From Obrimoposthia wandeli (lineage: Eukaryota): a stretch of DNA of 64,000 nucleotides. The stretch lies in assembly GCA_977020255.1 (NCBI GenBank), contig CDROCS010000121.1:1-64000 (forward strand), given 5' to 3'. Position 1 is the stretch's first letter. The number at the start of each line of letters is the position of its first letter. Both the position numbers and the translations under genes were made by a program. Shown here one piece after another: positions 838 to 20,570 of this stretch. The notes beneath the pieces are model-generated. The model worked only from the letters and a program-made list of their open reading frames with translations, was not told the origin of the DNA and did not search any database.

Positions 838-879
838 CACATAAAACACCTACTAAAGTATTATATAAAACTATATAAT
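838..879 (+). promoter_or_regulatory. Shared regulon box plus -10 element upstream of hemH
   Basis: CACA-TAAA-A-CAC-CTAC-TAA at 838-856; TATAAT at 874-879, 20 nt after CTAC, the same geometry as seven other promoters. Confidence 0.65.
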
Positions 880-900
880 AAATTCAAAAGAGTAGAGAAT

Positions 901-1810
901 ATGAAAAAAAACAATTGTGTTGATGAACATGGGTAGTCCTAATAATTTAGGCAGAAGTTGATGTTTTTAAAAAATATGTTTAATGACAAATATATAATTG
1001 GAGCTCACAACCAATAAGAGCAATGATAAATTTGGCTTATCTCCGAAGAGAAGTAGACTCAAAAGCTACACCATTATAATAGTTTTGTTAGGTGGGATTT
1101 CTGTGTGGAGTCATACAAAACAACGATTAATAAGAAAACTAGAAAAAGTAGATGCAGATGTATTTCAGATTGCAGATATACTCACTCCATTTATACAAAT
1201 AAAATAGTCTCAAAATTAAAATATTATGATGAGATATACACTTCCTATGTATCCACATTATTCAAGTACAACAACAAAGTCATCTATTGAAGATTTTATG
1301 GATATGCTAAGATCTTAGCAGGTAGATAAAAGGTAAAAACTATAGATGATTATTATGATGATAAGTTGTATAATAAGTAATGATAGAAGAATAAAGAATC
1401 TTTAAATGGGTAAGATATTAAAAATTTACCTTAATATTTTCTGGACGCTAACACCTCAAAAAGTTGTAGATAAAGGTGATTTATATCAAAAACATATATT
1501 ATCAAATGTAAAAAGTTGCAAAAGAGTTAAAAAGCAGAGTGCATTTAAAAATATTAAATTGCTGCGTATCAGTAAGATTGGGACCATTAGGAGTGGATTA
1601 GACCATGTTAAAGATAAGTTGGCAAGTTGTTAGAGACAATAAAGTTATTATCTATCCAGCTTCATTTACTGTGGATAACTCAGAAACACAAGGTGAATTG
1701 GATATGAGTATAGAAGTGGCAGATGAATTGGTTTGAGAGGATTGAGTCATAAAGCTCAAATAATCATCCTTGTTTTTTAGCGTGTTTAAAAGTTTATATA
1801 AAAAAGATAG
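901..1810 (+). pseudogene. hemH: Ferrochelatase, multiply frameshifted (real decay or sequencing error)
   Basis: Fragments across frames read IVLMNMGSPNN, PMYPHYSSTTTKSSIEDF, PQKVVDKGDLYQKH, AYQSKIGP, FTVDNSET, all ferrochelatase motifs. Confidence 0.8.
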
Positions 1811-1812
1811 AT

Positions 1813-2781
1813 ATGATTATGAAAATCGGTGTATCAACGTGCACATTAGGAAATATGTGTCGTTATGATGGTGGGGGAGCAAAAGATAGATTTGTAGTAG
1901 ATATACTTTCAAATTATTTTTGACTTATTGGTTGCACTGTCCAAGAAGAGCCTGTCTTTGGAACACAAGAGATACTATACGGCAGGTAGAGTTGATGAAA
2001 GATTCGTGTTCATATTGGTAAAGTGGAGAAGATGTAACTGATGCCTTGCAAAACTCTTCAAATTTATTTGCACAAAAAGCAAAAAGTGATGGACTTTGTG
2101 GTTTTTGTCTTAAAATCAAAAATCTCCTACATGTGGAATGGAGAGAGTCAAAAAGTATATCAAGAAAAAAATTCACATGAATGAAAAAAAAAGTATAGGA
2201 CTTTTTGCAAAGACACTACGAGAGAGTTATATCCTTATTTACCTATTGAAGAAGAAGGAAGACTTAATGACCCATGGCTAAAAGAGAATTTTTTTGATGC
2301 AAGTATTTGCATATAAAAACTATTTGATTTTTAGAAACAAAACCATTAGTGAAACATCTTGTAGAGTTTCACACAAACTATAAAGTATCTTATTTATGCG
2401 AAATCACAAACGAGTTATAAAGAGTTGGGAAAAATAGTTGCAAATCAAGATAAAAAAAAAGATTTACAAAGTTATCTTAGATGAATATGCTGCAGGATTT
2501 TAAAAGCTATAACTTTAAAAAGTTCTATAAATAAAACATATAATGTACTTCTTCATATCTTTGGGTATTTTTAAAAGATTTAACTAAAGAGGAAAAAGAG
2601 TTTATTTGCTTAACTGCTATTAATGAATATAAATCTGGTATCATTCCACTTATTGCAGTGACAAAATACTAAATCTTTACGTAATAAGGTTTGATGAACA
2701 ATATCTAAAAACACAGAAGTTCCTCAATCCCTATCTTCAAAAGAATTTGCATTAAGAAGTGATACTAAGGCATATAAATAA
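1813..2781 (+). pseudogene. DUF523 (2-thiouracil desulfurase-like) / DUF1722 YbgA-family protein, frameshifted
   Basis: N-terminus MKIGVSTCTLGNMCRYDGG and C-terminus EFALRSDTKAYK; lies directly upstream of photolyase as in the ybgA-phr arrangement. Confidence 0.75.
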
Positions 2782-4135
2782 TGAAACAAATACTTTGGTT
2801 TAGGAGAGATTTGCGAATAGATGATAATGCTATATTATCAAATGCAAGTAATGAAGTCTTTCCGATATTTATTTTTGATAAAATATACTCAATAATTTAC
2901 CAAAATGATAAACGAGTAACTTTTATATATCAAAATGTTTTAAAGCTGAAAAAAGATCTTAAAAGTATAGGTCTTGATTTGGCTATATTTTTTGATTACC
3001 CTATCAATGTATTTGAAAAAATTACAGGATGATTTTGATGAAGTATTATGCTCTTGTGATTTTGACAATTATGCAATAAAAAGAGATAAAGATGATAGAG
3101 TCTATTTTATCAGTGAAACGATTTTATGATAGTTTTCTTATCCATCTAATGATGGATTAAAAGTTGATGAAACTCCTTATAAAGCTTTTTACCCCTTTTA
3201 TAAAAATCTTAAAGTTTTATAGCAAAGTGATAGTATACAGGAGTATGAAAAGAAATCAAAATCTAAAACTCGCTCGTAATAACTATAATAATACAATTTC
3301 ATTAGATTCTTTAGGATTTGAAAGACAAAAGATAGAATCATTTTAGATAAAAATCCATTTGAACTATTGGCTGAATTTAAAGAAAAGATGAGTAAATATC
3401 AAGAAGATAGAGATTATTTTTATAAAAGATGCTACTTCAAAGTTATCTGATTCCTTTACGATTTGGAATAATATCACCAAAACAAGTTTTTAATATTGTT
3501 AAACAGTATAGTGAGGAGAATTTACATCAGAGAACTTTTTGGAGAGAATTTATAACTATATTTTATACTTTTTCCCTAAAAGTGAATCTATGATAATTTT
3601 AAAGATAAAAGTATTACTTGGAATCAAAATGAAGACTATTTTAAGCATGGTCTACTGGAAATACTGGTGTACCAATTATAGATGCAGCTGAGACATCTCC
3701 CAATAATACAGGACAAATGCACAATCATCTTCGTATGGTTGCTTCTTTTTTTTACAAAAAATGACTATTTTACTACCCTGGCAATGGGGAGAAAAATATT
3801 TTGCTTTAAAACTTCTTGATTATGAAGCATCCTCAAATATTGGTTCATGGCAATGGAGTGCAAGTGACAGGGCAGATAGTGTTCCTTATTTTAGAGTATT
3901 TAATCCATACACACAAAGTGCAAAGTTTGATAAAGAGGGTGTCTTTATCAAATCAATTTTGACAGAATTAAAAGAAATTGAGCCAAAACTGTTCCATAAA
4001 GAAAATGCTGTACAAACAAATTTATTTATAAATTATCCAAAAGCTATAGTTGATATTAAAAAATCAAGAGAAGATGCAATAGATATCTTTAAAGGACAAA
4101 ATAACTATACTAAACTACTATTAAATATTATATAA
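2781..4135 (+). pseudogene. phrB: Deoxyribodipyrimidine photolyase / cryptochrome, frameshifted
   Basis: Starts LWFRRDLRIDDN; later fragments [60 protein letters not shown]. Confidence 0.85.
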
Positions 4136-4156
4136 TTAATAAAAATGAGGATACTT

Positions 4157-5571
4157 ATGCAAACTTTAGATTTAGCTGTAATTGGTAGCGGTATAGGTGG
4201 AAGTTTAATATCTGCTCTGAATATTGATAAAAATATTATTCTTTTTGAAAAAAGACAAAATCTTGGTGGATGTGCGAGCATTTAAAAGATATGGAAATTA
4301 TTATAATACAGGTGCAACTACTCTTGTAGGATATGAAGATAATCATATACTTAAAAAACAGTTTGATGAAATAGGAATAAAGCCAAATATAACAAAATCT
4401 GATATTGCAATTAGAATAATTCAAAATAATAAAACACTTGATAGAGTTAAAAATTTAGAAGAATTTATAAGTATTATTAATAAAATTTATCCAAATAAAA
4501 ACAATGAAATTTTGGAAAAAAATACAACAAATAGATGAAAAATTTGGCAATTAAAAAAATATATTATGCTAAATATTCTTTGCAGAAATATATGAAAACT
4601 CTTTCCTTTTTAAGTGAACTATTTACCACTTTTAAATTTGATATACTCAAAAGTGCAGATGGTTTTATAAAAGAAACTTTAGGAAATATTCCAACAGAAT
4701 ATCAAAACTTCATCGATGCACAACTTCTCATTACTATACAAAGTAAATCAAAAGGTATCTCTCTTTGCTGTCATTAGCATTAGGCCTTTCTTATCCTTTT
4801 CATGATGTTTATGTCAATAATGGAATGGGAAGTTTAATTGAGGAGATAATTAAAGATGTTGAAGTAAAAAGAAATGAGCAAATAAATAAGATAATTAAAG
4901 ATGGTCAAAACTGGATAGTTCGAAGTGATAAGGATGAATATAAAACTAAGAAAATAGTTCTAAATTCTTCTATTTATGAAACAAGTCATCTTTTGATGAT
5001 ATCAATATAAAAAATACTATGATTCTTTTTCTTTTAGTGATCAAAGTGCTTTTGTTGTTTATCTTACTATTGATACTGATATAGATTTTTAGAACATTAT
5101 CAGTTTATATATGATGAACTTTTACCAAACTGTATTTCAAATTCTTTTTTTTTGTTTCATTTAGCAAAAAGGTGATAAGTTACTATCAAGAATAATACTT
5201 TAAGTGTAACTATTTCTACACATAGCAAAGCAACAGTCTGGAAAGACTTAACAAAAGAGGATTATGAATATCAAAAAAATAGTACACAAGATTACATAGT
5301 GGCGAAATTCTTAGAGTATTTTGATACAATCAAAAAAGAAAATATAACAAAATATTTTAGCTCAACATCAAATACATTTAGTAGGTATATCGGAAGATAT
5401 AATTGTGGTGGTAAAGCAATAGGATTTAATAATATTCATCAATTGCCTAGCTGTAACACACCATTTAGTGGATTGTATAATGTTGGTGATACTATATTTG
5501 CAGGTCAAGGCTGGCCTGGTGTTGCTGTAGGAGTTGATGTATTGCAAAAGGAACTAAATGGAATCAGTTGA
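4157..5571 (+). pseudogene. Phytoene-desaturase-like FAD oxidoreductase (CrtD/CrtI superfamily), frameshifted
   Basis: MQTLDLAVIGSGIGG Rossmann motif, LGGCA..FKRYGNYYNTGATTLVG, C-terminal GLYNVGDTIFAGQGWPGVAVG. Confidence 0.7.
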
Positions 5572-6536
5572 GCTGAAAATATCAAATCGTGATTGGTTAT
5601 ATATTTCTATAATAGGTACATTATTTGGGTTTTTTATATCTGTATTTTTTTACTTTTTACATGAAACGTTTCGTGATGTGTCAACTGTATTATTTGGAAC
5701 TTGTAGTGCATTTTTTATCACACTATTTTCTTCAATATTTATATCTGTATCTAATAAATATATTCTGCCCAATCTTAATGAAAAATTTTGGTATATAATA
5801 AGTTTTTTATTTTCCTTTTTAAGTGGATCTCTGGGTTTTTTATTTACTTATTCTTTATTTTATATAATTGAAACTAAGATTACCAATATTATTGAACCAT
5901 ATAGTTTATATCTAACATTAACTATTGGTTCATTAACTTTTCTTATAGGACTGATTCTTCATCAATTCATCTCTATGAAATATAAAAATGAATCTATTAA
6001 AAATGAGATACTCAATAGTAAAATTAAAACTTTAGAAAATGAACTTAATCCTCATTTCTTATTTAATGCATTAAACTCAATGAGTGAATTAGTATATATA
6101 TAGATCCTAAAAAGCTGAAGAGTCTATTTTAAATCTATCAAAATTTCTAAGAAATGCAATCAAAATAGATAGTTTAATAAGTATAAATAATGAGCTGGAA
6201 ATGGTGCAAACATATGTAGATATTGAAAATATACGTTTTGACGATAAAATAAAACTACATATATCAAATGCTCATACTATTTATAGTCAAATACCAAAGT
6301 TCTCTATTCAATTACTTGTTGAAAATGCGATTAAACATGGCTATGAAAATAAAGAATTAAATATATTTATAGAAATAAAGCAAGAAATTACAGTATATAA
6401 TGATGGTAAGATAACAAAAAACTTAAAATTTGGTACAGGATTATCTAATTTAAATAATAGATTAAATCTCCTAAATATAGGGAAATTAAAATTTATTGAT
6501 GATAAAAAAATGAAATTTATAATAGAGGTAAAGTAA
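5558..6536 (+). CDS. LytS/YehU-family membrane sensor histidine kinase; one frameshift near 6100 joins ORFs 5558-6103 and 6201-6536
   Basis: About five TM helices, then ELNPHFLFNALNS (His_kinase), IQLLVENAIKHG and GTGLSNL HATPase motifs; adjacent LytTR regulator. Confidence 0.85.
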
Positions 6537-7250
6537 ATGAAAATATTAGTTGTAGATGATGAAAGACTTGCAAGTTCGAGGATGACACGAATTTTAAATG
6601 AACTGGGTTATGATAATATTACTGTTTTTAATGATAGTACAAAAGCAGTTATCAATATAACTAGAAATAAATATGATTTAGTATTTTTGGATATTCAAAT
6701 GCCTAACATTACAGGACTTGAATTGGCTAATATGATATTAGAAATTGAACCAAAAACATTTATTATATTTCAAACTGCTTATGAGGAGTTTGCTCTTGAT
6801 GCCTTTAAAGTTGGCGGAGTTGATTATATTTTAAAACCAACTTCTAAAGAAAACGTATTACAAAGTATAAACAAAGTAAAAAGATATATGGAAGTAGTAC
6901 CAGAAGTTCAAACAAAAAAGATTATTGGAAAAAGAGGTGATAAAATTTATCTCATTGAACTTGAGGATATATTTTATATTAAAGCAGATTTAGATGAAAT
7001 TATTATTAGAATAAAAGATGCCGATGTATATGTACGAAAAAAAATAGGAAATATGGCAGAGCTTTTAAGTAATCAAAACTTTTTTAGAATTCACCGTTCT
7101 ATTATAATCAATATTGATAAAGTAAAATCGATGCAAAGTGTTGAACAATCAAAATTACAAATATCGTTTACTGATATAGATGATATAGTTACCAGCTCAA
7201 AAGATGGGGCAAAAGATTTTAGAGACTATTTAGAGAGAAGTAGTTTATAA
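6537..7250 (+). CDS. LytTR-family response regulator
   Basis: REC domain (VVDDE, FLDIQMP, TAY, KP) plus LytTR C-terminus FFRIHRSIIIN; intact and abutting the kinase. Confidence 0.92.
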   Translation: MKILVVDDERLASSRMTRILNELGYDNITVFNDSTKAVINITRNKYDLVFLDIQMPNITGLELANMILEIEPKTFIIFQTAYEEFALDAFKVGGVDYILKPTSKENVLQSINKVKRYMEVVPEVQTKKIIGKRGDKIYLIELEDIFYIKADLDEIIIRIKDADVYVRKKIGNMAELLSNQNFFRIHRSIIINIDKVKSMQSVEQSKLQISFTDIDDIVTSSKDGAKDFRDYLERSSL

Positions 7251-7284
7251 AATCTTTAAAGATTAAACTTAAATGGTATTAAGT

Positions 7285-7815
7285 TTAGTCTTTAATTATA
7301 GTAATCACAAGCTCCCCTACAGTAAATCCAAATTTTTTCATTTTTGAATGATTTAAAATCACTCCATCTTCTTGTAAATGAAGCCAATCTTTTACATTTA
7401 TATCTATTGTAGAATCATTGTACGGTACTGTCATTGTATAATCAATCATCACAGTGTTTCCATTAGCAATCATTTGTGCTTCACCTACAATATCACCTGC
7501 TGTTCCTATAAAATTTTTATCACCTGTTGGAGTTAATGTCCAAACTCTAGTTTGTTTTTCACCATTATCATACACAAATTTTTCATCTAATGTTCCAACA
7601 CCATTTTTATCCCAAGAACCTACTAAATGACCTTTGAAAGTTTTGATAATTTTTCCACTTCTATCTTTTACCATTCCATAGGCTGTTAACTTTCCATTAA
7701 AATATTTTTGAGGAATAAATTCTGGTCCTTTATTTGTAAAGTCTTCTATTTGCATTGTTGAACATCCTGTAAAAATTAAAAGTATTGTACTTAGAAATAA
7801 AGTTTGCAGTCTCAT
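7285..7815 (-). CDS. DUF3833-family lipoprotein
   Basis: Lipobox FTGC; YFNGKLTAYGMVKDRSG, DVKDWLHLQ pattern; last gene of the ufa-like operon. Confidence 0.8.
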   Translation of the reverse strand: MRLQTLFLSTILLIFTGCSTMQIEDFTNKGPEFIPQKYFNGKLTAYGMVKDRSGKIIKTFKGHLVGSWDKNGVGTLDEKFVYDNGEKQTRVWTLTPTGDKNFIGTAGDIVGEAQMIANGNTVMIDYTMTVPYNDSTIDINVKDWLHLQEDGVILNHSKMKKFGFTVGELVITIIKD

Positions 7816-9038
7816 GCTACAAGTCCTTCATTTAAATCCATATTTTGATATCTAGTAAATGCAATTTGCACAAGATTTATATTTCTAGTTAAAAAGGCAG
7901 CTTCACAATAACAAAGATACATTTTCCACATTCTGATGAAGTATTCATCAAAGCCTAATTTTTTTACTTCTTCTAATTTTTGATTAAAGTTTTCATGCCA
8001 GATATTGAGTGTTTTTGCATAATGTTCTGTAAATTCTTCCATATGTAAAAGGTTTAGTTTTGTGTTTTTTGTAGTTACATCTAATATTTTCCCAACACTT
8101 GGAAGATGCCCTCCTGGAAAGATATACTTTTGAATAAAATCAGTTCCCTTACAATATGAACTATATCTTTGATCTGGCATTGTAATAACTTGCATTAGGA
8201 GTATACCACTTGGTTTTAACAGTGATTCACATTTTTTAAAGAATACATCAAAATATTCACGACCTACTGCTTCAAACATTTCAACAGCAATAACAGCATC
8301 AAATTCACCTTCCATATCTCTATAATCTTTTAGTATTACATCAACAGATTCTTGAATATTATGCTCTTTAAATCTACCTTCACAAAGCTTTTTTTGCTCT
8401 TTGGATAGTGTTAAAGTTGTAACTTCACAACCATACTCTTTTACTAAATGTATAGCCATGGCTCCCCAACCTGAACCAATTTCTAATACTTTTGAACCTT
8501 TTTTAAGGTTTAGTTTTTTTGCAAGTAAATCTATTTTTCTTTTTTGTGCATCAAATAAAGGTTCATCTGCTGTTTCAAATACTGCTGAAGAATACATCAT
8601 TGTATCATCTAAAAATAGTTCAAAAAAATCATTTGATAAGTCATAGTGTTCTTGAATATTTTTAGCCGAACGTGTTTTTGAGTTTTTTCTCATGATATGT
8701 TTGAGTTTATTGACTATAGGAAATAAGTTATAAAGACTAAACTTTTTTTCATCTTCGCTTTTTGTTTGTAAAGCATCCGAGTTAATAAGTCCTAATGTAA
8801 TCAATGCTGTTAAATCATCACATTCAAAATCTTTATCCATATAACTTTCAGCAAATCCAATATCTCCAAAAAAAGTAAGTCTTCTAAATAAATCTGCATT
8901 ATTTAGAACTATTTTTGCTTTTGGTTCTTGATTATTTCCATATATTTTTACTTTACTATCACAAAATGTAACTTGTAGTGTTCCTTTTGTGATTTTTGAA
9001 AAATACTTATCTCCTAAATTATTCCAAAAAGATTTCAT
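7812..9038 (-). CDS. cfa: Cyclopropane-fatty-acyl-phospholipid synthase family SAM methyltransferase (UfaM-like)
   Basis: HYDLSNDFFELFLDDTMMYSSA, VLEIGSGWG, FIQKYIFPGG, RMWKMYLCYCEAAF. Confidence 0.9.
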   Translation of the reverse strand: MKSFWNNLGDKYFSKITKGTLQVTFCDSKVKIYGNNQEPKAKIVLNNADLFRRLTFFGDIGFAESYMDKDFECDDLTALITLGLINSDALQTKSEDEKKFSLYNLFPIVNKLKHIMRKNSKTRSAKNIQEHYDLSNDFFELFLDDTMMYSSAVFETADEPLFDAQKRKIDLLAKKLNLKKGSKVLEIGSGWGAMAIHLVKEYGCEVTTLTLSKEQKKLCEGRFKEHNIQESVDVILKDYRDMEGEFDAVIAVEMFEAVGREYFDVFFKKCESLLKPSGILLMQVITMPDQRYSSYCKGTDFIQKYIFPGGHLPSVGKILDVTTKNTKLNLLHMEEFTEHYAKTLNIWHENFNQKLEEVKKLGFDEYFIRMWKMYLCYCEAAFLTRNINLVQIAFTRYQNMDLNEGLVA

Positions 9039-9039
9039 T

Positions 9040-9780: not shown

Positions 9781-11030
9781 AACTCACATCCAAATTCTTC
9801 TGCAATTGTATTTGCACTATACAAACCATCTTCATGAAAACCATATCTCCAGTAAGCCCCTGCAAAGTAAGTGTTGTTTTTACCATTGATTAGATCTCGT
9901 TTACTTTGAGCTTCTATAGCTTTTTTATCAAACTGAGGGTGTTCATAGCTTATATTTTCTATTACTTCATCTAATTTTTCTGTTTCATTTAATGAAACAA
10001 AATACTCTTTTTTACTCTTTAAATTTTGTAAACGATTTATCCAATATGACAATGTAACATTTTGGCTTTCTCCATTTGTTTTATAATTCCAAGCAGCGTA
10101 AATTTTTTTATCTGGATATAAAGCTTTTTTATCTGTATGTAAAACTGCTTTATTCTCTTTGTATTCAAAACATGAAAGAATTCGAAGTTCATCTACTGTT
10201 GGTTCATCTATTAAATTAAGTGCATCTGGTGCGTGCATAGCAAAGATAACTTTGTCATAAACTGATTGTGAATTATCTTTATGAACTAAGATTATTTTAT
10301 TCTGTTCTCTTAATACATTTATTACATCAGAATTTTTAAATATTTTTCCAGATATTTCTTTTGATATTTTTTCAACATAGTTGATAGAACCACCACTAAC
10401 TGTAAGCCATTGGTGATGAGTATCAACACCTAATAAGCCATGATTTTTAAAAAAATGTAAAAATGAACGTGCAGGAAAATCACTCATCTTATCACTAGGT
10501 GTTGACCAAATCGATGAACCCATTGGAATAATATATCTATCTTTAAAATATTTTGAATAGTCTTTTAAATACTCACCTAATGATAAATCTAAATCACTAT
10601 GATTGTTTTTTAAATCTTCATTTGCTTTTTTATTAAACTTTAATACATCAAAAATCATTTTATTATGTGAGTAAGAAAAGATATTTTTCTTTTGAAAATA
10701 CATACCTTTTAATGATTCACCATTATAAGCCAGGTTGCTTTTTTGATCCCAAAATGCAAAACTCATATCACTATTTTCAATTTTTACATCTAATTGCTCA
10801 AATAGTTTGGTAAGTAATGGATAAGTAGGGTGGTTAAATACTAAAAACCCTGTATCCACACCAAATTTCTTACCATCTTCTGTTACTTGTGAAGTTCTCG
10901 CATGACCACCTAATCTATTATCTTTTTCATAGAGATCAACATCGTGTTTTTTGCTTAATAAATATGCACTTCCTAGTCCACTTATTCCGGCTCCTAAAAC
11001 TGCTATTTTATATTTTTTTTCTTGATTCAT
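9777..11030 (-). CDS. FAD-dependent oxidoreductase, amine-oxidase family (UfaD-like fatty-acid desaturase)
   Basis: KIAVLGAGISGL, RLGGHA, VDTGFLVFNHPTYP, GAYWRYGFHEDG; directly upstream of DUF1365 and cfa. Confidence 0.85.
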   Translation of the reverse strand: MNQEKKYKIAVLGAGISGLGSAYLLSKKHDVDLYEKDNRLGGHARTSQVTEDGKKFGVDTGFLVFNHPTYPLLTKLFEQLDVKIENSDMSFAFWDQKSNLAYNGESLKGMYFQKKNIFSYSHNKMIFDVLKFNKKANEDLKNNHSDLDLSLGEYLKDYSKYFKDRYIIPMGSSIWSTPSDKMSDFPARSFLHFFKNHGLLGVDTHHQWLTVSGGSINYVEKISKEISGKIFKNSDVINVLREQNKIILVHKDNSQSVYDKVIFAMHAPDALNLIDEPTVDELRILSCFEYKENKAVLHTDKKALYPDKKIYAAWNYKTNGESQNVTLSYWINRLQNLKSKKEYFVSLNETEKLDEVIENISYEHPQFDKKAIEAQSKRDLINGKNNTYFAGAYWRYGFHEDGLYSANTIAEEFGCEL

Positions 11031-11082
11031 TTGTATCGTCCTTGCGAATCTTGTGGCGTGTATATAAATCTTTTGTACTGTT

Positions 11083-11124
11083 ATTTTATGATTATATAAA
11101 GAGTTTTTGTAGGAATAAAATGTT
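11083..11124 (-). promoter_or_regulatory. Shared regulon box plus -10 upstream of the ufa-like operon
   Basis: Minus strand AACA-TTTT-A-TTC-CTAC-AAA (11124-11106); TAAAAT at 11088-11083, 20 nt after CTAC. Confidence 0.7.
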
Positions 11125-11144
11125 GGTTGATAAGATTTTTATAA

Positions 11145-12404: not shown

Positions 12405-12406
12405 GA

Positions 12407-12844
12407 TTAAGAGTTTATCTTACTTTTTATAAATTTCATAAAAAAAGAAAGAATAGGAATTTTCTCGTATAAATTACTAGATGAATCCCAATAATCAATA
12501 TGAGATACTACTCTATTTTCTTTATTAAATTCAACTCTACTAACGCCTTCAAAAGATTCATTTTTATTACTACCTTTAAATGAAAAATGAAAATTCCATT
12601 TTAAATAGGCAATATTATGTTGTTCCACTATTTCTGTAACTATAAAACTTGGCTTATCAAGTTTTATATACATATCTTCAAATATTTTATATAACTTATT
12701 AATTCCAATAATATCATGAAAAGGATCTTTAAATCGTACCTCATTATCAAATATTTTTTCATACTCTTTTATGCTCGTGTTTTTATCAATATTTTCAAAA
12801 AATTGTGCATATATCTTTGCATTAGTATTATTTATGGTACTCAT
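12407..12844 (-). CDS. SnoaL/NTF2-like protein
   Basis: VRFKDPFHDIIG, GVSRVEF, SHIDYWD, LYEKIP. Confidence 0.85.
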   Translation of the reverse strand: MSTINNTNAKIYAQFFENIDKNTSIKEYEKIFDNEVRFKDPFHDIIGINKLYKIFEDMYIKLDKPSFIVTEIVEQHNIAYLKWNFHFSFKGSNKNESFEGVSRVEFNKENRVVSHIDYWDSSSNLYEKIPILSFFMKFIKSKINS

Positions 12845-13602
12845 GGTAGCATCTTTTTTGTAAGAGATAAAGAAATTTTATATGGCATCATTTTTAGTAG
12901 ACTTAAAAATATTCGTAATCCAAAAGGAAATCTAATTTCAAAAGCTGATGATTTTTCCATACCTTTAAGTATTTTTTCTGCGGTATATTTAGCTTCCATG
13001 AGTTGAGGCATTTTAAATGTATTTTTTGCTGTTAATTTTGTTTTTACAAATCCATGATTTATGATTTGTAATTTTATATTTGAAACTTCTAATTCCGGAT
13101 GAATAGACTCTGCAAGATTAACAAGTGCAGCTTTAGGAGCAGAGTATCCTCCTCCTTGGGGTAGTCCAAAGTAGGATGAAAGACTAGCGTTCCAAACCCA
13201 ATGCCCTTTTTTTGAATCTTTAAAATAAGGAAAAATTTCAGTCATTAATCGTATTACACCAAGATAATTTACATCATTCATCTGTTCAAATTTCACGCTA
13301 TCCCATGAATTGATACTCATTACTTCATATGCTCCTGCATTATAAAACCAAATATCTAAGCCATTGTATATATTCCATGCAATTTTAACTTTTTTAGCTA
13401 TATCACTTACTAAAGATACATCAAGATCGATTAGGCTTAATTCTTTTGGGTAATGTTCTTTAAGACTTTGTAAGTCTATGCTATTTGATGTATTTCTTGA
13501 GCTTGTGATAACAAGATAATTATTATGTAAACATAATTTTACTAACTCTAATCCAATTCCAGAACTTCCACCAACAATCCAAATTCTTTTTTTAGGTTCC
13601 AT
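12841..13602 (-). CDS. SDR-family oxidoreductase; start reassigned to the ATG at 13602
   Basis: IWIVGGSSGIG, NAG, YSAPKAA; RBS-like AAAGG precedes the MEPKK start. Confidence 0.88.
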   Translation of the reverse strand: MEPKKRIWIVGGSSGIGLELVKLCLHNNYLVITSSRNTSNSIDLQSLKEHYPKELSLIDLDVSLVSDIAKKVKIAWNIYNGLDIWFYNAGAYEVMSINSWDSVKFEQMNDVNYLGVIRLMTEIFPYFKDSKKGHWVWNASLSSYFGLPQGGGYSAPKAALVNLAESIHPELEVSNIKLQIINHGFVKTKLTAKNTFKMPQLMEAKYTAEKILKGMEKSSAFEIRFPFGLRIFLSLLKMMPYKISLSLTKKMLP

Positions 13603-13623
13603 ATTGAAGCCTTTTTTGTTTAT

Positions 13624-13664
13624 ATTATAGAGTTTTTGCATATCTTTCGTAGAGTTAATATGTC
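13624..13664 (-). promoter_or_regulatory. Shared regulon box plus -10 upstream of SDR-SnoaL-MFS
   Basis: Minus strand GACA-TATT-A-ACT-CTAC-GAA (13664-13646); TATAAT at 13629-13624, 19 nt after CTAC. Confidence 0.65.
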
Positions 13665-13698
13665 ACTTGATATATTTATTCTATCTTTATTGCCAACA

Positions 13699-13740
13699 AA
13701 CAAAATACCCCTACAAAATAATTTTAATTAACTATAGAAT
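13699..13740 (+). promoter_or_regulatory. Shared regulon box plus -10 upstream of the renalase-like gene
   Basis: AACA-AAAT-A-CCC-CTAC-AAA (13699-13717); TAGAAT at 13735-13740, 20 nt after CTAC. Confidence 0.65.
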
Positions 13741-13762
13741 AACAAAATAAAAGGATAAATCT

Positions 13763-14677
13763 ATGGAAATAGCAATAATTGGTGCAGGCTTAAGTGGATG
13801 CAATATATATAGCCTCTTAAAAGGCGATGGCCATAATGTTACATTATTTGAAAAGTCTCGAGGTGCAGGTGGAAGATGTAGTACACGATATATAAATGAC
13901 AAACTTATAGATCATGGAACACCATATTTTAATTCTGCAAATGATGAGTTTACAGAGTTTTGTGAATCAAAAATAGAAGAAAATATATTGGTAAAGAAAG
14001 ACAAATATTATTATCCAAAAAATGGAATAAACAAACTTTGCTCATCAATGATTTCTGAAGATGATTTTATTAAAAATACAAAAATCGTATCTTGTGATTT
14101 CTCAAATAAAAAATGGACATTAACAGATGAAAATAATATTAACTATAAAGATTTTGACAAACTTATTTTAACTATTCCAGCACCTCAGATATTACAAATG
14201 GATATAAACTTAAGTGAAAGCATAATAGATAAGTTAGAAAGTGTTAAGTATAACTCTATAGCCACACTATTGATATATTCATACACTTTAGTAAATATTA
14301 TGAACCCAATATTAATAGATAATGACAGTTTTAAAAAGATTGTAGACAACTCATCAAAATATAATTATGATAACTTTAGCAGCTATGTTATTCATCTAAG
14401 TGAAGAGCTCACAAATGAACAAAATTTTATAAACAAAGATGAAGTAATTAAATTTATGAAAGAAAGAATATATAATGTAGCAGGTATTAATTTAGAAGAT
14501 GACTTCCATATACTGCCTCATTTTTGGAAGTATGCTTTTGTTTCAAATAGTATTGATGATGATTTTATATATGATAAAAATAATTGCATTGGAATTTGTG
14601 GAGATTATTTTAATGGTAAAGACCTAGAAGGCAGTTATATTAGTTCAAAGAGATTGTATGAGCATGAGTTTAAATAA
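13763..14677 (+). CDS. Renalase-like NAD(P)/FAD-dependent oxidoreductase
   Basis: IAIIGAGLSG, FEKSRGAGGRCSTR, DHGTPYF, HFWKYA, GICGDYF. Confidence 0.85.
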   Translation: MEIAIIGAGLSGCNIYSLLKGDGHNVTLFEKSRGAGGRCSTRYINDKLIDHGTPYFNSANDEFTEFCESKIEENILVKKDKYYYPKNGINKLCSSMISEDDFIKNTKIVSCDFSNKKWTLTDENNINYKDFDKLILTIPAPQILQMDINLSESIIDKLESVKYNSIATLLIYSYTLVNIMNPILIDNDSFKKIVDNSSKYNYDNFSSYVIHLSEELTNEQNFINKDEVIKFMKERIYNVAGINLEDDFHILPHFWKYAFVSNSIDDDFIYDKNNCIGICGDYFNGKDLEGSYISSKRLYEHEFK

Positions 14678-15560
14678 GCTTGAAAATACTTTTGTAATAG
14701 GAGATGTCCATGGCTGTTACTATACCCTGCTAAAGCTAATAAGACAATTACCAGAAGATGCAGAAATTATCTTTGTTGGGGATCTTTGTGATAAGGGTGA
14801 ATTTTCTAAAGATGTTATAGAATTTGTTATAGAAAATAACTACCTTTGTGTTAAAGGAAATCATGAAAATTTATTTGAAAAACACATAAAAGATGTAATA
14901 GACAATAACAAAGATACACTTTGGAATAGTGATGAAAAATATGGTGGCTTACAATGTATTCGAAGTTATAAAGGAAACTTTTCGCTTATAAATAAACATC
15001 TAGAGTGGATAAAAAAGCTACCGATGTATTTAGAAATAGACAAGTACTTTATAACACATGGATTTGCTCTAGAGTATTATGAATATAGAAATAATAAAGA
15101 TTATTATAATGATATATTACTCTCAAGACTGTATCCAGATACTATAGAGTTAGAATCTAAAGAAAATATTATAAATGTATTTGGACATTGTATATTCCCT
15201 GAAGTCCAAATAGGCAAAAAATATATTTGTCTTGATACAGGCTGTGCATATGGTGGTAAACTCTCTGCATTACAACTTGGAACAAATAAAATATTTGTAG
15301 AACCTATGGATGAAAATGATTCAAATTATCACATTAAAGAATTAAAACTTAAAGACATTAATCTGGATTTAGATGGCTTAGAAGAGATTCGAAATATTAC
15401 ACTAAAAGATGACTGTAAATATTGTGCGTTTGATATTATATCCAATGAAGTACTAGCGTATATTGTTAAAAAATACCCAAATATAGCAAAAACTGAAATG
15501 CAATATATGAAAGAAAAAGCCATTATTTTCCCAAAACAAATAAATAAATTTTTTAACTAA
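14658..15560 (+). CDS. Metallophosphoesterase (ApaH/PrpA-like)
   Basis: GDVHG, VGDLCDKG, KGNHE, THG, GH, LDTGCAYGGKLSA motifs. Confidence 0.88.
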   Translation: MSMSLNKLENTFVIGDVHGCYYTLLKLIRQLPEDAEIIFVGDLCDKGEFSKDVIEFVIENNYLCVKGNHENLFEKHIKDVIDNNKDTLWNSDEKYGGLQCIRSYKGNFSLINKHLEWIKKLPMYLEIDKYFITHGFALEYYEYRNNKDYYNDILLSRLYPDTIELESKENIINVFGHCIFPEVQIGKKYICLDTGCAYGGKLSALQLGTNKIFVEPMDENDSNYHIKELKLKDINLDLDGLEEIRNITLKDDCKYCAFDIISNEVLAYIVKKYPNIAKTEMQYMKEKAIIFPKQINKFFN

Positions 15561-15600
15561 CATTTTATTACTATTAAAAAATATAACACTTTGATAAAAT
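15559..15600 (+). promoter_or_regulatory. Shared regulon box plus extended -10 upstream of the EAL gene
   Basis: AACA-TTTT-A-TTA-CTAT-TAA (15559-15577); TGA-TAAAAT with hexamer at 15595-15600, 20 nt after CTAT. Confidence 0.65.
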
Positions 15601-15622
15601 TTAAAAATAAAAAGGATTCATA

Positions 15623-16681
15623 ATGTCATGTACAAAATGTAGTGAGAAGTTTTACCTAAAAAAACAACCAGGAATAATTTTCTTTATAAGTGAATTTGAA
15701 GAACTAACTAATAAGACGACTCAATTTCTTGAAAAATTATCATTGAAAGTTGAAAACTTAAATGGGCTTTTAAGTATAACTGTAGATAATACAGAAAATT
15801 TCTTTTGTGAAAATTTAGATGCATTTAAATCAACATACAATGAACTAGAATTAAATGATATAAAAGTATTTATAACTGATGAAAAATCAACTTTTACTTT
15901 TAATTCGATACTAAGTGCAAAACCACTTCAAAGATATATAAATCTTTTTGACGATAAAGAATTCTTCGATATAGTGAATAATGAATCACTAACCTCACAT
16001 TTTCAACCAATTATAGATATGAGAGATAATACAATCTATGGTTATGAAACATTAGTTCGTGGTGTTAAAGAGGATGGAAGTTTAATGTATCCAGATGAGC
16101 TTTTTTCTAAGTCAAAGAGAAATGATCTAAACTTCAAACTTGATAGACTATGTCGTGAGAGTTCACTAAAAACAGCAGCTACAAAAAAAGTGCATCAAAA
16201 AGTTTTTATTAACTTTATTCCAACTTCTATTTATGATCCAGAGTTTTGTTTAGCTTCGACTGAAAAATGGGCAAAACAGTTAGAGTTTGACCCATCTCAA
16301 ATAGTATTTGAAGTTGTTGAAACAGAGCTGGTAAAAGATCAAAAACATCTGAAGAATATATTGGAATTTTATAGAAGCAAGGGATATAAAATTGCACTTG
16401 ATGATGTAGGTGAAGGATATTCAAGTCTTAATATGTTAATAGAACTTAAGCCAGATATTATAAAAATTGATAGAAATATTATAGATGGGATAGATAAAAA
16501 TGAGCTAAAACAATCAGTTTATAAAGCATTGTTCAACTTAGCACGAGAGCATGATATAGAGGTTTTAGCTGAAGGAGTTGAAACAGCTTACGAGCTTGAA
16601 ACTATCAAGTCAATAGGGGTTGATTATGTGCAGGGGTATTATTTCGCAAAACCTGCATCTGAACCAATACGAAAGATATAA
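15623..16681 (+). CDS. EAL-domain c-di-GMP phosphodiesterase with an N-terminal CxxC extension
   Basis: FQPI, YETLVRG, FINF, FEVVE, ALDDVGEGYSSL, KID, AEGVE, QGYYF; starts MSCTKC. Confidence 0.9.
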   Translation: MSCTKCSEKFYLKKQPGIIFFISEFEELTNKTTQFLEKLSLKVENLNGLLSITVDNTENFFCENLDAFKSTYNELELNDIKVFITDEKSTFTFNSILSAKPLQRYINLFDDKEFFDIVNNESLTSHFQPIIDMRDNTIYGYETLVRGVKEDGSLMYPDELFSKSKRNDLNFKLDRLCRESSLKTAATKKVHQKVFINFIPTSIYDPEFCLASTEKWAKQLEFDPSQIVFEVVETELVKDQKHLKNILEFYRSKGYKIALDDVGEGYSSLNMLIELKPDIIKIDRNIIDGIDKNELKQSVYKALFNLAREHDIEVLAEGVETAYELETIKSIGVDYVQGYYFAKPASEPIRKI

Positions 16682-16692
16682 AATGTTTAACT

Positions 16693-16734
16693 AACATTTT
16701 AGCACTACAAACAATATAAACTTTGTATTATAAT
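16693..16734 (+). promoter_or_regulatory. Shared regulon box plus -10 upstream of the hypothetical-TIGR03643-pdxH operon
   Basis: AACA-TTTT-A-GCA-CTAC-AAA (16693-16711); TATAAT at 16729-16734, 20 nt after CTAC. Confidence 0.72.
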
Positions 16735-16756
16735 ATAAAGAAAATAAGGAAATAAA

Positions 16757-17113
16757 ATGCCACATATAGTTTTAGAAAAAGCAGAGAGTATAAAAGCGTG
16801 TTCAATTGTTATTGAACCAATGATGCAAAGAGGTGAAAAAGGTATATTAAAGATTACAGATGTTTATATGAATCATAATGAAAATTCAGTACTAATCGAA
16901 AGTATTGCTATAGAAGATGGAAAAAATCAAACTTTTTTTATACAACTTTCTGGTAAAGGTGAATCTGTTACAGTTAGACTTCTTCCTATGACGGATCCTG
17001 AAAAAACAAACGGTGTAAAAAAAATTATGGCACTAGTTGCACATAAGATAAAACAATCAAATCCAAATATAACTTATGGAAAAACAAATTTACAAGATTT
17101 TATCATAGAATAA
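16757..17113 (+). CDS. Hypothetical protein (118 aa)
   Basis: Clean ORF with TAAGGA RBS; no family recognised. Confidence 0.8.
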   Translation: MPHIVLEKAESIKACSIVIEPMMQRGEKGILKITDVYMNHNENSVLIESIAIEDGKNQTFFIQLSGKGESVTVRLLPMTDPEKTNGVKKIMALVAHKIKQSNPNITYGKTNLQDFIIE

Positions 17114-17123
17114 AAAACGATCA

Positions 17124-17408
17124 ATGAACTACATAAGAAAAGAAAAACTAAAACCTATAAAAAAAAGAGATTTATCTTTTGAAGAATTTGATGATAATCG
17201 GCTTATTGAGATGGCTTGGCAAGACAGAATGCCATTTGATATTATATATAAACAATATGGTCTTACTGAAAACCAAGTAAAAAACAAAATGAGAAAACTT
17301 ATAAGCAAAAAAGCTTATAATAGATGGAGAAAAAGGGTTCACGGAAGAGTTACAAAACATATTAAAAAATGTGACCATAAACCAGATAGGTTTCAAGGTC
17401 CTTGGTAA
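17124..17408 (+). CDS. TIGR03643 (DUF2805)-family protein
   Basis: RLIEMAWQDRMPFDII..QYGLTENQV..MR......YNRWRKRV signature. Confidence 0.85.
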   Translation: MNYIRKEKLKPIKKRDLSFEEFDDNRLIEMAWQDRMPFDIIYKQYGLTENQVKNKMRKLISKKAYNRWRKRVHGRVTKHIKKCDHKPDRFQGPW

Positions 17409-17419
17409 AAAGGAAAAAG

Positions 17420-18061
17420 ATGGTAGATTTAGCAAAAATGAGACAAGAATATACAACAAAAGGACTACATCGAGAAGACTTAGATAACAATCCTTTTGGA
17501 CAATTTGAATTGTGGTTCAATCAAGCAGTTGAAGCAAAACTCATTGAACCAAATGCATTTACACTATCTACTGTAGGAACTGATTTAAAACCAAGTCAAA
17601 GAACAGTATTACTGAAAAGATATGATGAAAGTGGTTTTGTATTTTTTTCAAACTATGGCAGTAAAAAATCAAAACAGATAGAACAAAATAAGTTTGTATC
17701 TGCTCATTTTGCCTGGCTTGGACTTGAAAGACAGCTCCGTATTGAGGGTACAATTGAAGAGATAAGTAAAACTGAATCTTTAAAATATTTTTTAAGTCGT
17801 CCAAGAGGAAGTCAAATAGGAGCTTGGGTATCTCACCAAAGTGAAGTTGTAACTTCAAGAAGTATATTGGAACAAAAATTTGATCAAATGAGAATGAAAT
17901 TTGCAAATGGAGAAATACCTTTTCCCGATAAATGGGGTGGATATATTATAAGACCTAGACTTTTTGAGTTTTGGCAAGGTGGTAAAGATAGATTGCATGA
18001 TAGATTTGAGTACATTTTAGAAAATGATAAAACTTGGAATATTCACAGATTAGAACCATAA
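17420..18061 (+). CDS. pdxH: Pyridoxamine 5'-phosphate oxidase
   Basis: MRQEY, EPNAFTLST, RTVLLK, FFSNYGSKKS, SRPRGSQIGAW, EFWQGGKDRLHDR; start set at the ATG after AAAGGA. Confidence 0.93.
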   Translation: MVDLAKMRQEYTTKGLHREDLDNNPFGQFELWFNQAVEAKLIEPNAFTLSTVGTDLKPSQRTVLLKRYDESGFVFFSNYGSKKSKQIEQNKFVSAHFAWLGLERQLRIEGTIEEISKTESLKYFLSRPRGSQIGAWVSHQSEVVTSRSILEQKFDQMRMKFANGEIPFPDKWGGYIIRPRLFEFWQGGKDRLHDRFEYILENDKTWNIHRLEP

Positions 18062-18073
18062 GTACGATTAACC

Positions 18074-18115
18074 GACATTTCACAACTACTAAATAAAATT
18101 CTTATATAGTAAACT
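18074..18115 (+). promoter_or_regulatory. Shared regulon box plus -10 upstream of phasin-ubiB
   Basis: GACA-TTTC-A-CAA-CTAC-TAA (18074-18092); TAAACT at 18110-18115, 20 nt after CTAC. Confidence 0.65.
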
Positions 18116-18147
18116 ACTAGTATTAAGAAAAAAATAAAGGAATAATT

Positions 18148-18414
18148 ATGTTACAAGAATTACTTCACACAGGTATGGGAGCAGGACTTTTGCTAAAAGA
18201 GAAAGTAGAAGATGAGTTGAAAAAGCTTCAAGATGATGGTAAAATAAAAACAGATGATGCAAAGTCATTTTTAGAGTCACTTAAAACAAAAGGTGAACAA
18301 GAAGATGATAAAGTAAAACAAAAATTAAAGTCTACACTCAAAGAGATAATAGATGAACTGGGAATTGCAACAAAAGAGGATTTAGAAAAGTTAAAACAAG
18401 AACTTAAAGGTTAA
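18148..18414 (+). CDS. Phasin-family protein
   Basis: LLHTGMGAGLLLKEKVEDELKKL...GKI, ELGIATKEDL pattern; typical partner upstream of ABC1 kinases. Confidence 0.75.
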   Translation: MLQELLHTGMGAGLLLKEKVEDELKKLQDDGKIKTDDAKSFLESLKTKGEQEDDKVKQKLKSTLKEIIDELGIATKEDLEKLKQELKG

Positions 18415-18498
18415 ATTATAAAAACTTTCTTTAAAAATTTAAAATTTTATAATCCTACTAGAATTTATGGGGTATTTAGTTTTTTACTTACACTTTTT

Positions 18499-19971
18499 AT
18501 GGTTATCAAGAAAAAGGATAAATTTCTTTTTTTTAAACCATTATCTCCTAAAAAACTAAAAAATACCATCACTTCACTTGGAGCTAGTTTTGTTAAATTA
18601 GCTCAGGTATTAGCAACAAGAGCAGATTTTTTTTCTAGTGAATACCTTGAAGAGTTAAAAGAACTACACGATCAACTACCATCTATGAAAAAAGATGATT
18701 TTGATTTGGTATTTAGTGAGTCATTTGAAAATTCACCATTTAAAAGCTTTGATAATACTCCTATAGCTTCAGCTTCGATTGGACAAGTACATGTAGCATA
18801 TTTACATGATGATACAAAAGTTGCAGTGAAACTTAGACGAATGGGAATAAAAGAACAAGTAACAGCAGATATAAAAATCATCTCTTTTTTTAATAAACTT
18901 TTTAAACCACTCTTTTCATTTTATACCAAAAATTCAATTGATGCAGTTATAAGTGAATTTTCTAAAATGATAATGCAAGAAGTAAACTTATCGACAGAAT
19001 TATCAAATTTGGAGAAATTTAGAAATGTATATGAACATAGTGATATAAGGTTTCCTCTTCCATATAAAGAGTATTCAACTCAAAGTGCGTTAGTGATGAG
19101 TTTTGAAGAGGGATTTCGTTTTGATGATAAGGAAAGTATTTTAAAAAATGATATTGACTTTAGGGGAATAATATCCAAGCTTGTAGATTTTTATACAACA
19201 CAAATGCTTATAAATGGGTATTTTCATGCAGACCCACATCCTGGAAATATTTTAGTGACAAAAGAGGGTGAATTGGTTTTTTTAGACTTTGGAATGGTCA
19301 AAACTGTACCAAATGAAACAAGAATTGCGATTATTGAACTCATAAAAGCCGCAAATGAACAAGACTATGAAGCGTACATAAGTGCAAATAAACGATTAGG
19401 AACTATTAGCTATGAAGCTCCAGAAGGTGAACTAGCTGAGTTTACAGCAAAGATGTTCGAGATATTTGGTAATGAAAACTTGGATAGTGAATCTATGCAA
19501 AAATTAGCATTTGAAGTACTTGAAACTACACGTGATTTTCCTTTTAAACTTCCTAGTGATGCTATATATATTTTAAGAGTTAGTGCTATAATTGAGGGAC
19601 TAGGAACGACCTATATAGAAAATTTTAACGGCATAAAAGATATTTTACCAATACTACAAAAAAATATCCCTAAAGCATTAGGTGCAAAAGAGTCCATAAA
19701 AGAAACAATCATAGATGAAATCAAAGATATTCCTTTTATAGTAAGAGATTTTAAAACGATGGTTAAAAAAGCTAGTGAAGGAAGACTTGAAGTTGAGCTA
19801 TCAAGTGGACAACTTGAATACATTTCAAAAGAACTAAAAAGATATATTAAACCTTTTGTAACTGGATTTGCATTTATTTTAGGTTCTTTTTTTATTTTAT
19901 TTTTGAATCGAGATTATGACACCCTAGCAATTATAATCTTTTTAATTGGTTTTATCCAGATTGTATATTAA
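18499..19971 (+). CDS. ABC1/AarF/UbiB-family atypical kinase; the frame is open back to 18415, so the true start may be further upstream
   Basis: LGASFVKLAQVLATR, PIASASIGQVH, VAVK, FHADPHPGN, LDFGM. Confidence 0.9.
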   Translation: MVIKKKDKFLFFKPLSPKKLKNTITSLGASFVKLAQVLATRADFFSSEYLEELKELHDQLPSMKKDDFDLVFSESFENSPFKSFDNTPIASASIGQVHVAYLHDDTKVAVKLRRMGIKEQVTADIKIISFFNKLFKPLFSFYTKNSIDAVISEFSKMIMQEVNLSTELSNLEKFRNVYEHSDIRFPLPYKEYSTQSALVMSFEEGFRFDDKESILKNDIDFRGIISKLVDFYTTQMLINGYFHADPHPGNILVTKEGELVFLDFGMVKTVPNETRIAIIELIKAANEQDYEAYISANKRLGTISYEAPEGELAEFTAKMFEIFGNENLDSESMQKLAFEVLETTRDFPFKLPSDAIYILRVSAIIEGLGTTYIENFNGIKDILPILQKNIPKALGAKESIKETIIDEIKDIPFIVRDFKTMVKKASEGRLEVELSSGQLEYISKELKRYIKPFVTGFAFILGSFFILFLNRDYDTLAIIIFLIGFIQIVY

Positions 19972-19991
19972 AATTACAAATCTTATGAAAT

Positions 19992-20033
19992 GTCATAAAA
20001 CAACTATGAATTAATACTTTCTTTATATATAAT
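19992..20033 (+). promoter_or_regulatory. Shared regulon box (weaker match) plus -10 upstream of the lipocalin operon
   Basis: GTCA-TAAA-A-CAA-CTAT-GAA (19992-20010); TATAAT at 20028-20033, 20 nt after CTAT. Confidence 0.55.
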
Positions 20034-20569: not shown

Positions 20570-20570
20570 T

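Follow-up and report, generated by a model that had tools for sequence, protein, structure and literature searches.

Which regulator controls the apparent photo-oxidative stress genes that lie together near the start of contig CDROCS010000121.1 (assembly GCA_977020255.1, Obrimoposthia wandeli), and through which DNA element would it act? We analysed positions 1 to 64,000 of the forward strand of this contig (64 kb, called the window below), in which a sequence-only reading had proposed that a 19-bp motif, RACATN3AN3CTAYNAA, precedes the first gene of almost every transcription unit from hemH to the lipocalin gene blc. The motif was found to be part of a longer, 31-bp box, tTATnAACtRACAt-N7-CTACnAAAa, and one such box stands before the first gene of all eight units of the cluster (about 24 genes, 838-21391). 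There is very little doubt that the box is real, conserved and specific to this regulon. We further think it fairly likely, judging from promoter architecture and gene neighbourhood, that the box is the operator of a dedicated light/singlet-oxygen regulon, which would be bound and activated by the LytTR response regulator encoded inside the cluster. The amine oxidase of the window is 92% identical to that of Poseidonibacter, and the DNA was thus taken to be that of a Poseidonibacter-like member of the Arcobacteraceae.

Identification of a 31-bp box in eight promoters

Exact matches to the 19-bp pattern were counted in the window and in dinucleotide shuffles of it. Five were present, at 11106-11124 and 13646-13664 on the minus strand and at 15559-15577, 16693-16711 and 18074-18092 on the plus strand, against 0.13 expected; this is a roughly 40-fold excess, and a count of five was not reached in any of 100 shuffles. 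The other three of the eight sites that had been claimed (838-856, 13699-13717 and 19992-20010, all on the plus strand) were also present, each with one mismatch. Matching with one mismatch was not significant by itself (11 found, 4.55 expected, a 2.4-fold excess), and these three sites therefore rest on their position and on the extended motif. It is clear from the alignment of the eight sites with their flanks that the motif is longer than 19 bp, with a conserved T-N-AAC immediately on its 5′ side; the A three bases upstream that had been noticed before is part of this element.

A first matrix was built from the eight sites of the window, and a later one, of 31 columns, from sites of many genomes (44 unique), the consensus of which reads tTAT.AAct.ACAt.tta...CTAC.AAAa, then aTAaAaT. 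With the 31-column matrix, seven of the eight window sites scored above 15 (15.4-36.2), where local shuffles predict 0.13 per 64 kb, so that the motif stands far above chance by this measure as well as by exact matching. The site at 838 scored 13.9; it is located in an error-ridden stretch of the assembly (see below), and these errors may partly be behind its weak score. Just one other match in the window exceeded 12 (12.6 at 61270; 0.6 expected by chance), with no annotated gene start after it, and no convincing box was found with this matrix outside the cluster in the 64 kb. A candidate ninth site at 4085-4115 (score 10-12.5) was treated as chance because it falls inside the photolyase coding region, where the orthologues have overlapping genes and no promoter.

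Position of the box in the promoter

The box keeps a fixed distance from a -10 element. As had been proposed, TATAAT, TAAAAT, TAGAAT or TAAACT follows CTAY by 20 nucleotides (nt) in seven sites and by 19 nt at 13664 (minus strand). Measured from the end of the full box, the TAnAAT hexamer begins 14-15 nt further on, and counting the hexamer as -12 to -7 places the box at about -57 to -29. In six of the eight units, 21-23 nt separate the hexamer from the start codon. A canonical -35 element is absent from the eight promoters, and the 31-bp box stands in its place; a TG extended -10 showed no conservation among the box promoters. A generic scan for sigma-70 promoters and terminators returned 67 matches against 71 expected and had no power in this DNA.

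The same register was seen beyond the window. At a matrix cut-off of 14, the window and 25 loci together gave 68 sites, 67 of them directed at a nearby start codon and one seemingly spurious. A TAnnnT hexamer accompanied 66 of these sites, at an offset of 14-15 nt in 62 of the 66.

Conservation of the box in related genomes

Related loci were collected by an amine-oxidase scan with one genome per species, which yielded 19 loci from Poseidonibacter, Halarcobacter, Malaciobacter, Arcobacter, Sulfurimonas and Sulfurospirillum. All 19 retained the box at orthologous SDR, amine-oxidase and ybgA/hemH promoters, always oriented toward the gene and with the same spacing to the -10 hexamer, so that the conservation on which the proposal depended was found in every related locus. 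Three loci (L007, L017 and L018) were low at the first matrix and carried recognisable variants at the expected places.

The operon of the flavoprotein, the histidine kinase and the LytTR regulator

The box with the weakest upstream half is box 1 (828-858, plus strand), followed by TATAAT at 874-879, which would drive the operon hemH-ybgA-phr-FAD oxidoreductase-kinase-regulator (FAD, flavin adenine dinucleotide). Orthologous promoters with the box were found in L001-L005, L020-L022 and L024. The first part of the operon (901-5571, plus strand) comprises hemH, ybgA (DUF523/DUF1722), the photolyase gene phr and a gene for a 474-amino-acid (aa) FAD/amine-oxidase-like oxidoreductase, with frames broken by assembly errors. 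Frameshifts were seen in hemH, ybgA, phr, the FAD oxidoreductase gene and the kinase gene (about 900-6100), and tblastn with the intact orthologues of L023 and L024 gave many frame changes. When short-read contigs from the same sample (about 35x) were compared with the window, they differed from positions 1679-5664 by about 96 indels and 57 substitutions, and one of them replaces 6010-6095, including the apparent kinase frameshift near 6100; agreement was exact from 6095 on. The sequence was present in only two runs, both stored as contigs, and a search for RNA runs gave none that was usable. The frameshifts between about 900 and 6100 are thus assembly errors, and decay of the regulatory operon into pseudogenes was ruled out by the same contigs.

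The kinase and the LytTR regulator are the only regulatory genes conserved with the cluster. The kinase (5558-6536, plus strand) is a LytS-family histidine kinase (PF06580); it is about 325 aa long and is predicted to cross the membrane with four helices. An intact orthologue matched His_kinase at 2e-21. In kinases of 325-333 aa, the four helices are conserved and rich in aromatic residues and are followed directly by the His_kinase and ATPase parts; domain scans found no periplasmic or cytoplasmic sensor domain besides the four helices. The regulator (6537-7250, plus strand) consists of a receiver domain (REC, 7e-25) and a LytTR domain (6e-19), and it is likely, on the strength of this genomic context, to be the protein that binds the box. 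A sequence search of the PDB with the regulator gave matches to the receiver domain only.

Orthologues of the regulator are common in Arcobacteraceae; among the best 120 matches listed were those of Poseidonibacter lekithochrous, Malaciobacter pacificus, Arcobacter roscoffensis, A. cloacae, A. suis and A. caeni. In all contexts read, the order was [hemH and/or ybgA]-phr-FAD oxidoreductase-kinase-regulator, and the Sulfurimonas arrangement was hemH-FAD oxidoreductase-kinase-regulator. Wherever the upstream DNA was readable, a box preceded the regulator operon (the window, L001-L005, L016, L020, L022, L024 and L029-L031), with weaker boxes, below the cut-off of 14, in L021 (12.1) and L025 (13.1). 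A second box directly after the regulator gene was observed in several loci. The regulator of the window is about 61% identical to the Poseidonibacter ones, whose cfa and DUF3833 proteins are 94-96% identical to those of the window (6537-7250 compared with 7812-9038), and the block from hemH to the regulator shows 87-90% DNA identity to the metagenome contig L023. From this contrast, the regulatory operon seems to differ in history from its neighbouring targets, seemingly through allele replacement or transfer.

With the kinase as query, about 40 full-length families at 32-60% identity were found among 1.8 billion cluster representatives. Six of these families were looked up; the same FAD oxidoreductase gene precedes the kinase gene in all six, and a LytTR regulator gene follows in five, the exception being L028. 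In L029, L030 and L031, where kinase identity is 45%, 40% and 37% and the large stress cluster is not adjacent, a single box was found within 8 kb on either side. It lies before the three genes for oxidoreductase, kinase and regulator (the triad), and its end is followed at 15 nt by a hexamer, which in L030 is a weaker CATAAT. The box thus goes with the two-component module, and not with the stress genes alone.

The FAD/amine-oxidase-like gene (466-485 aa) stands directly before the kinase gene in the window (4145-7250), L023 and L026-L031, down to 32% kinase identity, and the two frames usually overlap. This pairing, together with the lack of a separate sensor domain in the kinase, suggests that the kinase senses within the membrane, possibly with the flavoprotein as partner. 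It is also possible, if somewhat doubtful, that the triad represents a novel type of sensor for light, singlet oxygen or photo-oxidised membrane lipid, with the damage being detected by the flavoprotein or by the membrane helices. The ancient photo-oxidative stress regulon would then have a third, independent form of control, in addition to ECF (extracytoplasmic function) sigma-E/ChrR and the B12-dependent LitR/CarH. If true, such a sensor would be spread in Arcobacteraceae and Sulfurimonas, with distant homologues in further lineages.

A diverged version of the system was met in L027 (48% GC), where the kinase is 36% identical and the operon reads thiD-thiE-NMT1-FAD oxidoreductase-kinase-regulator. 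Ahead of this operon, at L027:167-199, lies a perfect 12-nt direct repeat, AGGGATGAATGG, with a 21-bp period, which ends 14 nt before TACAAT and is the sole short-range direct repeat in 12.9 kb; the matrix found no 31-bp box in L027. The repeat is likely the operator of the diverged system, and its predicted operator sequence is one that changed along with the regulator while the period and the distance to the -10 were kept.

Predicted binder of the box and alternative explanations

Sites of LytTR regulators consist of two repeats of 9-11 nt with spacers of 11-13 nt (PMC4847170), with a strict 9-12-9 pattern in S. mutans-type systems (PMC6193735). The box can be read in a similar way, as two imperfect 9-bp units (YTAYnAAMw) placed 21 bp apart, tTATnAAc and CTACnAAA, with an invariant ACA beside the distal unit. 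Self-similarity of the motif peaks at offset 21 among offsets 6-39, by about two standard deviations, via the shared TA..AA. Outside the 31-bp boxes, this architecture finds its best support in L027, in the perfect 12-nt repeat of 21-bp period described above. For AgrA, the consensus [TA][AC][CA]GTTN[AG][TG] and fewer contacts at the promoter-proximal repeat have been described (PMC5600425), and a weaker promoter-proximal repeat is known for both AgrA and YpdB (PMC5600425, PMC4847170). On its bottom strand (TYAGTTnAT; commonly TCAGTTTAT or TTAGTTTAT), the distal unit fits this AgrA-type consensus at 8/9 positions or more in 26 of the 44 unique sites, a fit shown by 0.9% of window 9-mers, and the proximal unit fits it at 6-7/9; such likeness is a weak criterion, since the LytTR family has no common consensus (PMC4847170). 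Those LytTR response regulators that have been characterised and act on phased direct repeats activate transcription and regulate themselves positively (PMC6193735, PMC5600425).

In the mechanism that we propose, the adjacent four-helix LytS-family kinase would phosphorylate the LytTR regulator, and the 470-aa FAD-dependent amine-oxidase-like protein may serve as a co-sensor. The regulator would bind the box as a dimer; under stress, its phosphorylated form would fill the strong distal unit first and then the weak proximal unit overlapping -35, and once bound it would recruit RNA polymerase. About 24 genes would be turned on in this way, among them those for photolyase, ferrochelatase, cfa, DUF1365, DUF3833, the amine-oxidase lipid-modification proteins, lipocalin, SRPBCC, the pyridoxamine-phosphate (PNP) oxidase and the EAL protein, and the regulator's own operon would be turned on as well, giving positive feedback. 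Activation upon photo-oxidative damage would be plausible.

Several features of the box and of its distribution weigh against the LytTR regulator as its binder. The two units share four or five positions only (TA..AA), in AT-rich DNA, and the most strongly conserved bases (ACA and the C's of CTAC) are not matched in the opposite unit; the box thus falls short of a clean direct repeat. The strand that reads like a LytTR site faces away from the promoter. In characterised Firmicute promoters, LytTR repeats lie 4-11 bp upstream of the -35 hexamer (PMC6193735), whereas here 14-15 nt separate the end of the proximal unit from the -10, so that this unit occupies the -35 position itself. In ten of the 19 genome loci (Arcobacter iocasae, L019, is one of them), the box is present and the regulator is absent from the surrounding 10 kb, and a regulator gene inside the regulon would carry the box even if another protein bound there. 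In view of the overlap with -35, the strand direction and the unpaired ACA, we file the box as a LytTR-like operator with class-II-like geometry and not as a proven member of the class.

The imperfect repeat, the overlap with -35, which is atypical for LytTR promoters (PMC6193735), and the ten loci with boxes and no nearby regulator also speak for an unlinked transcription factor of another family, encoded elsewhere, for which the LytS/LytTR operon would be just a further target, for instance in a second tier. We consider this unlikely: the box stays with the triad operon even in loci that have no adjacent stress cluster and a kinase of 37-45% identity, no other DNA-binding protein was found to be conserved in any cluster, and the repeat of L027 shows textbook 21-bp phasing and keeps the distance to the -10. 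A little less probable again is a repressor, in which the regulator or another protein would block RNA polymerase at -57 to -29 and stress would release it. The box does cover the -35 position, like the operators of light-released repressors, promoters of this phylum function without a -35 element, and the -10 hexamers, mostly TATAAT or TAAAAT, might suffice alone. However, there is no conserved TG extended -10, the rigid 14-15-nt distance from box to -10 fits polymerase contact better than simple occlusion, and the positive autoregulation of the characterised phased-repeat regulators mentioned above points the other way.

Could the box instead be the -35-side element of an alternative, ECF-like sigma factor, as in RpoE-ChrR? 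The AAC in the box is characteristic of ECF -35 elements, ECF sigma factors occur in Arcobacter-family genomes (one is encoded at the edge of L025), and in Rhodobacter and Vibrio these gene families are controlled by sigma-E (PMC3546557, PMC5241685). With AAC as -35 and CTAC as -10, though, the two elements would be 13 nt apart, too close for such a pair, and AAC lies 37 nt from TAnAAT; this ECF reading was ruled out by the 13-nt spacing and the fixed downstream TAnAAT, a housekeeping-type -10 that keeps its offset in 62 of the 66 hexamer-bearing sites. The 64 kb gave 0 matches to TGATC(C)-N15-19-CGTA/TAAGA, and Pfam scans of the open reading frames (ORFs) of the window and of the conserved ORFs of the related clusters found no sigma or anti-sigma gene, ECF sigma and ChrR included, and no MerR-type regulator. 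An alternative sigma factor is accordingly very improbable. To chance resemblance in AT-rich promoter DNA, or a generic promoter feature of the family, we give practically no weight. The genome has 28% G+C and the one-mismatch matches are in only 2.4-fold excess, but exact matches are far in excess, no convincing site occurs elsewhere in the 64 kb, the box is kept across genera at orthologous promoters in fixed register, and the generic sigma-70 scan showed no enrichment. The in-cluster LytTR regulator acting as an activator at the box is thus the reading that we prefer. The earlier proposal of one regulator binding at about -35 to -50 and controlling some 20 genes is supported in its outline, with a predicted site that is longer (-57 to -29) and a gene set that is somewhat larger (about 24).

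Genes of the predicted regulon

Domain assignments by Pfam agreed with the photo-oxidative gene families that had been recognised from the sequence. We infer from this gene content that the signal of the regulon is light, singlet oxygen or membrane photo-damage and that its genes are co-induced by light or singlet oxygen.

The best-scoring site is box 2 (11104-11134, minus strand; 36.2), with its -10 hexamer TAAAAT at 11088-11083. It precedes the unit amine oxidase-DUF1365-cfa (cyclopropane-fatty-acid-synthase family)-DUF3833, which runs on the minus strand from 11030 down to 7285. Relatives carry a small lipocalin-like gene between box and amine-oxidase gene, as seen when window positions 11030-11104 are compared with L001:9423-10001; the window is without that gene and has 52 nt from the -10 hexamer to the amine-oxidase start codon instead. 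Box 3 (13644-13674, minus strand), the variant with 19-nt spacing, has TATAAT at 13629-13624 and precedes SDR-SnoaL-MFS on the minus strand (ATG at 13602, down to 11145). Back to back with it lies box 4 (13689-13719, plus strand; TAGAAT at 13735-13740), which precedes genes for a second FAD oxidoreductase and a metallophosphoesterase (13763-15560, plus strand). These two boxes (13644-13719) are 14 bp apart and serve divergent promoters; the same layout was seen in Poseidonibacter loci, where the right-hand gene is a different one (epimerase/DUF1731).

The remaining four units are all on the plus strand. Box 5 (15549-15579; TAAAAT at 15595-15600) precedes the gene for an EAL-domain protein (15623-16681), which has a 117-aa N-terminal region without Pfam match. 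In Arcobacter and Halarcobacter loci the gene is conserved beside that for PNP oxidase, and its product may link the regulon to cyclic di-GMP signalling. Box 6 (16683-16713; TATAAT at 16729-16734) precedes genes for a 118-aa protein, a DUF2805 protein and the PNP oxidase (16757-18061), so that in the window the oxidase gene (17402-18061) stands under box control. In relatives, thiamine-precursor genes (thiD-thiE-NMT1) and a gene for a pyridoxal-phosphate-dependent enzyme were found under a box (L022:10708, L012:2230, and L008, L009 and L010 for thiD), and replacement of light-sensitive cofactors may be part of the regulon. Box 7 (18064-18094), with the hexamer TAAACT at 18110-18115, precedes genes for a phasin-like 88-aa protein and an ABC1/UbiB-type kinase (18148-19971). 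The last site, box 8 (19982-20012; score 15.4; TATAAT at 20028-20033), is followed by the unit lipocalin (blc)-SRPBCC-CbiX (20057-21391). Elsewhere in the window, at 48571-49271, two neighbouring genes encode small ankyrin-repeat proteins of 120 and 116 aa, which are unusual for free-living bacteria.

Comparison with known regulatory systems

The predicted regulator shares its receiver and LytTR domains with AgrA of Staphylococcus aureus, YpdB and BtsR of E. coli, and ComE, PlnC, HdrR and BrsR of lactic acid bacteria, and, as in E. coli YpdB/BtsR, its partner is a LytS-family (PF06580) kinase. The box may also be read, like their operators, as two units 21 bp apart, of which the distal one resembles the AgrA-type consensus and the proximal one is weaker, and the box before the regulator's own operon would fit the autoregulation of those systems. 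There are differences, however. The proximal unit here overlaps -35 and ends 15 nt from the -10, the consensus-like reading faces away from the promoter, and an extra invariant ACA occurs in the distal half only. Known LytTR regulons concern quorum sensing, bacteriocins, murein hydrolases and pyruvate uptake, whereas here photo-oxidative repair and lipid-modification genes are found. The kinase differs too: it has only four helices, lacks 5TM-Lyt and GAF domains and is paired with an FAD oxidoreductase.

In gene content, the closest parallel is the RpoE-ChrR regulon of Rhodobacter sphaeroides, Caulobacter and Vibrio cholerae, which includes photolyase, a cfa homologue and an operon of the amine oxidase/DUF1365/SDR type, and in which the regulatory genes belong to their own regulon, as here; this sigma-E/ChrR target set has been described for Rhodobacter and Vibrio (PMC3546557, PMC5241685). 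The RpoE promoter consensus is TGATCC-N16-18-TAAGA, and that of Vibrio is TGATC-N18-CGTAT (PMC5241685). Control differs in that the present box stands beside a housekeeping-type -10 in promoters that appear to be under two-component control, with no TGATC(C)-N16-18-TAAGA/CGTAT promoter.

A regulator gene within the photolyase operon is also known from LitR/CarH, the MerR-family, B12-dependent light-released repressors, and from the MerR-like regulator beside phr in Vibrio cholerae. The LitR/CarH operator lies over the -35 region of light-protective genes, as the box does. CarH operators are 11-bp-phased repeats, which the box does not seem to resemble, and neither the window nor the 31 loci examined (gene tables or ORFs) gave a MerR-type helix-turn-helix protein with a B12-binding domain. 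In the literature searched, we found no description of light regulation in Arcobacter, nor, for these bacteria, any paper that connects photolyase, DUF1365 or light with LytTR regulators, in agreement with the earlier remark that the motif is not a described Campylobacterota site.

Implications for photo-oxidative stress control

The photo-oxidative gene set (photolyase, cfa-type lipid modification, DUF1365, DUF3833, lipocalin and SRPBCC) is among the most widely conserved stress regulons, and its control has so far been understood only via sigma-E/ChrR and LitR-type repressors. Here the same genes are, most likely, wired to a two-component system through a defined operator, a form of control not described for this stress response. 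The box defines the regulon in a form that a matrix scan can carry over to marine Arcobacteraceae and Sulfurimonas, and it offers precise sites and point mutations for testing. The four-helix kinase joined to a flavoprotein is a tractable candidate for the sensing of light damage in the membranes of non-phototrophs. If the proposed binding by the in-cluster regulator is true, it would extend LytTR regulators, mostly known from quorum sensing in Gram-positive bacteria and from the sensing of pyruvate, to promoters of class-II-like geometry.

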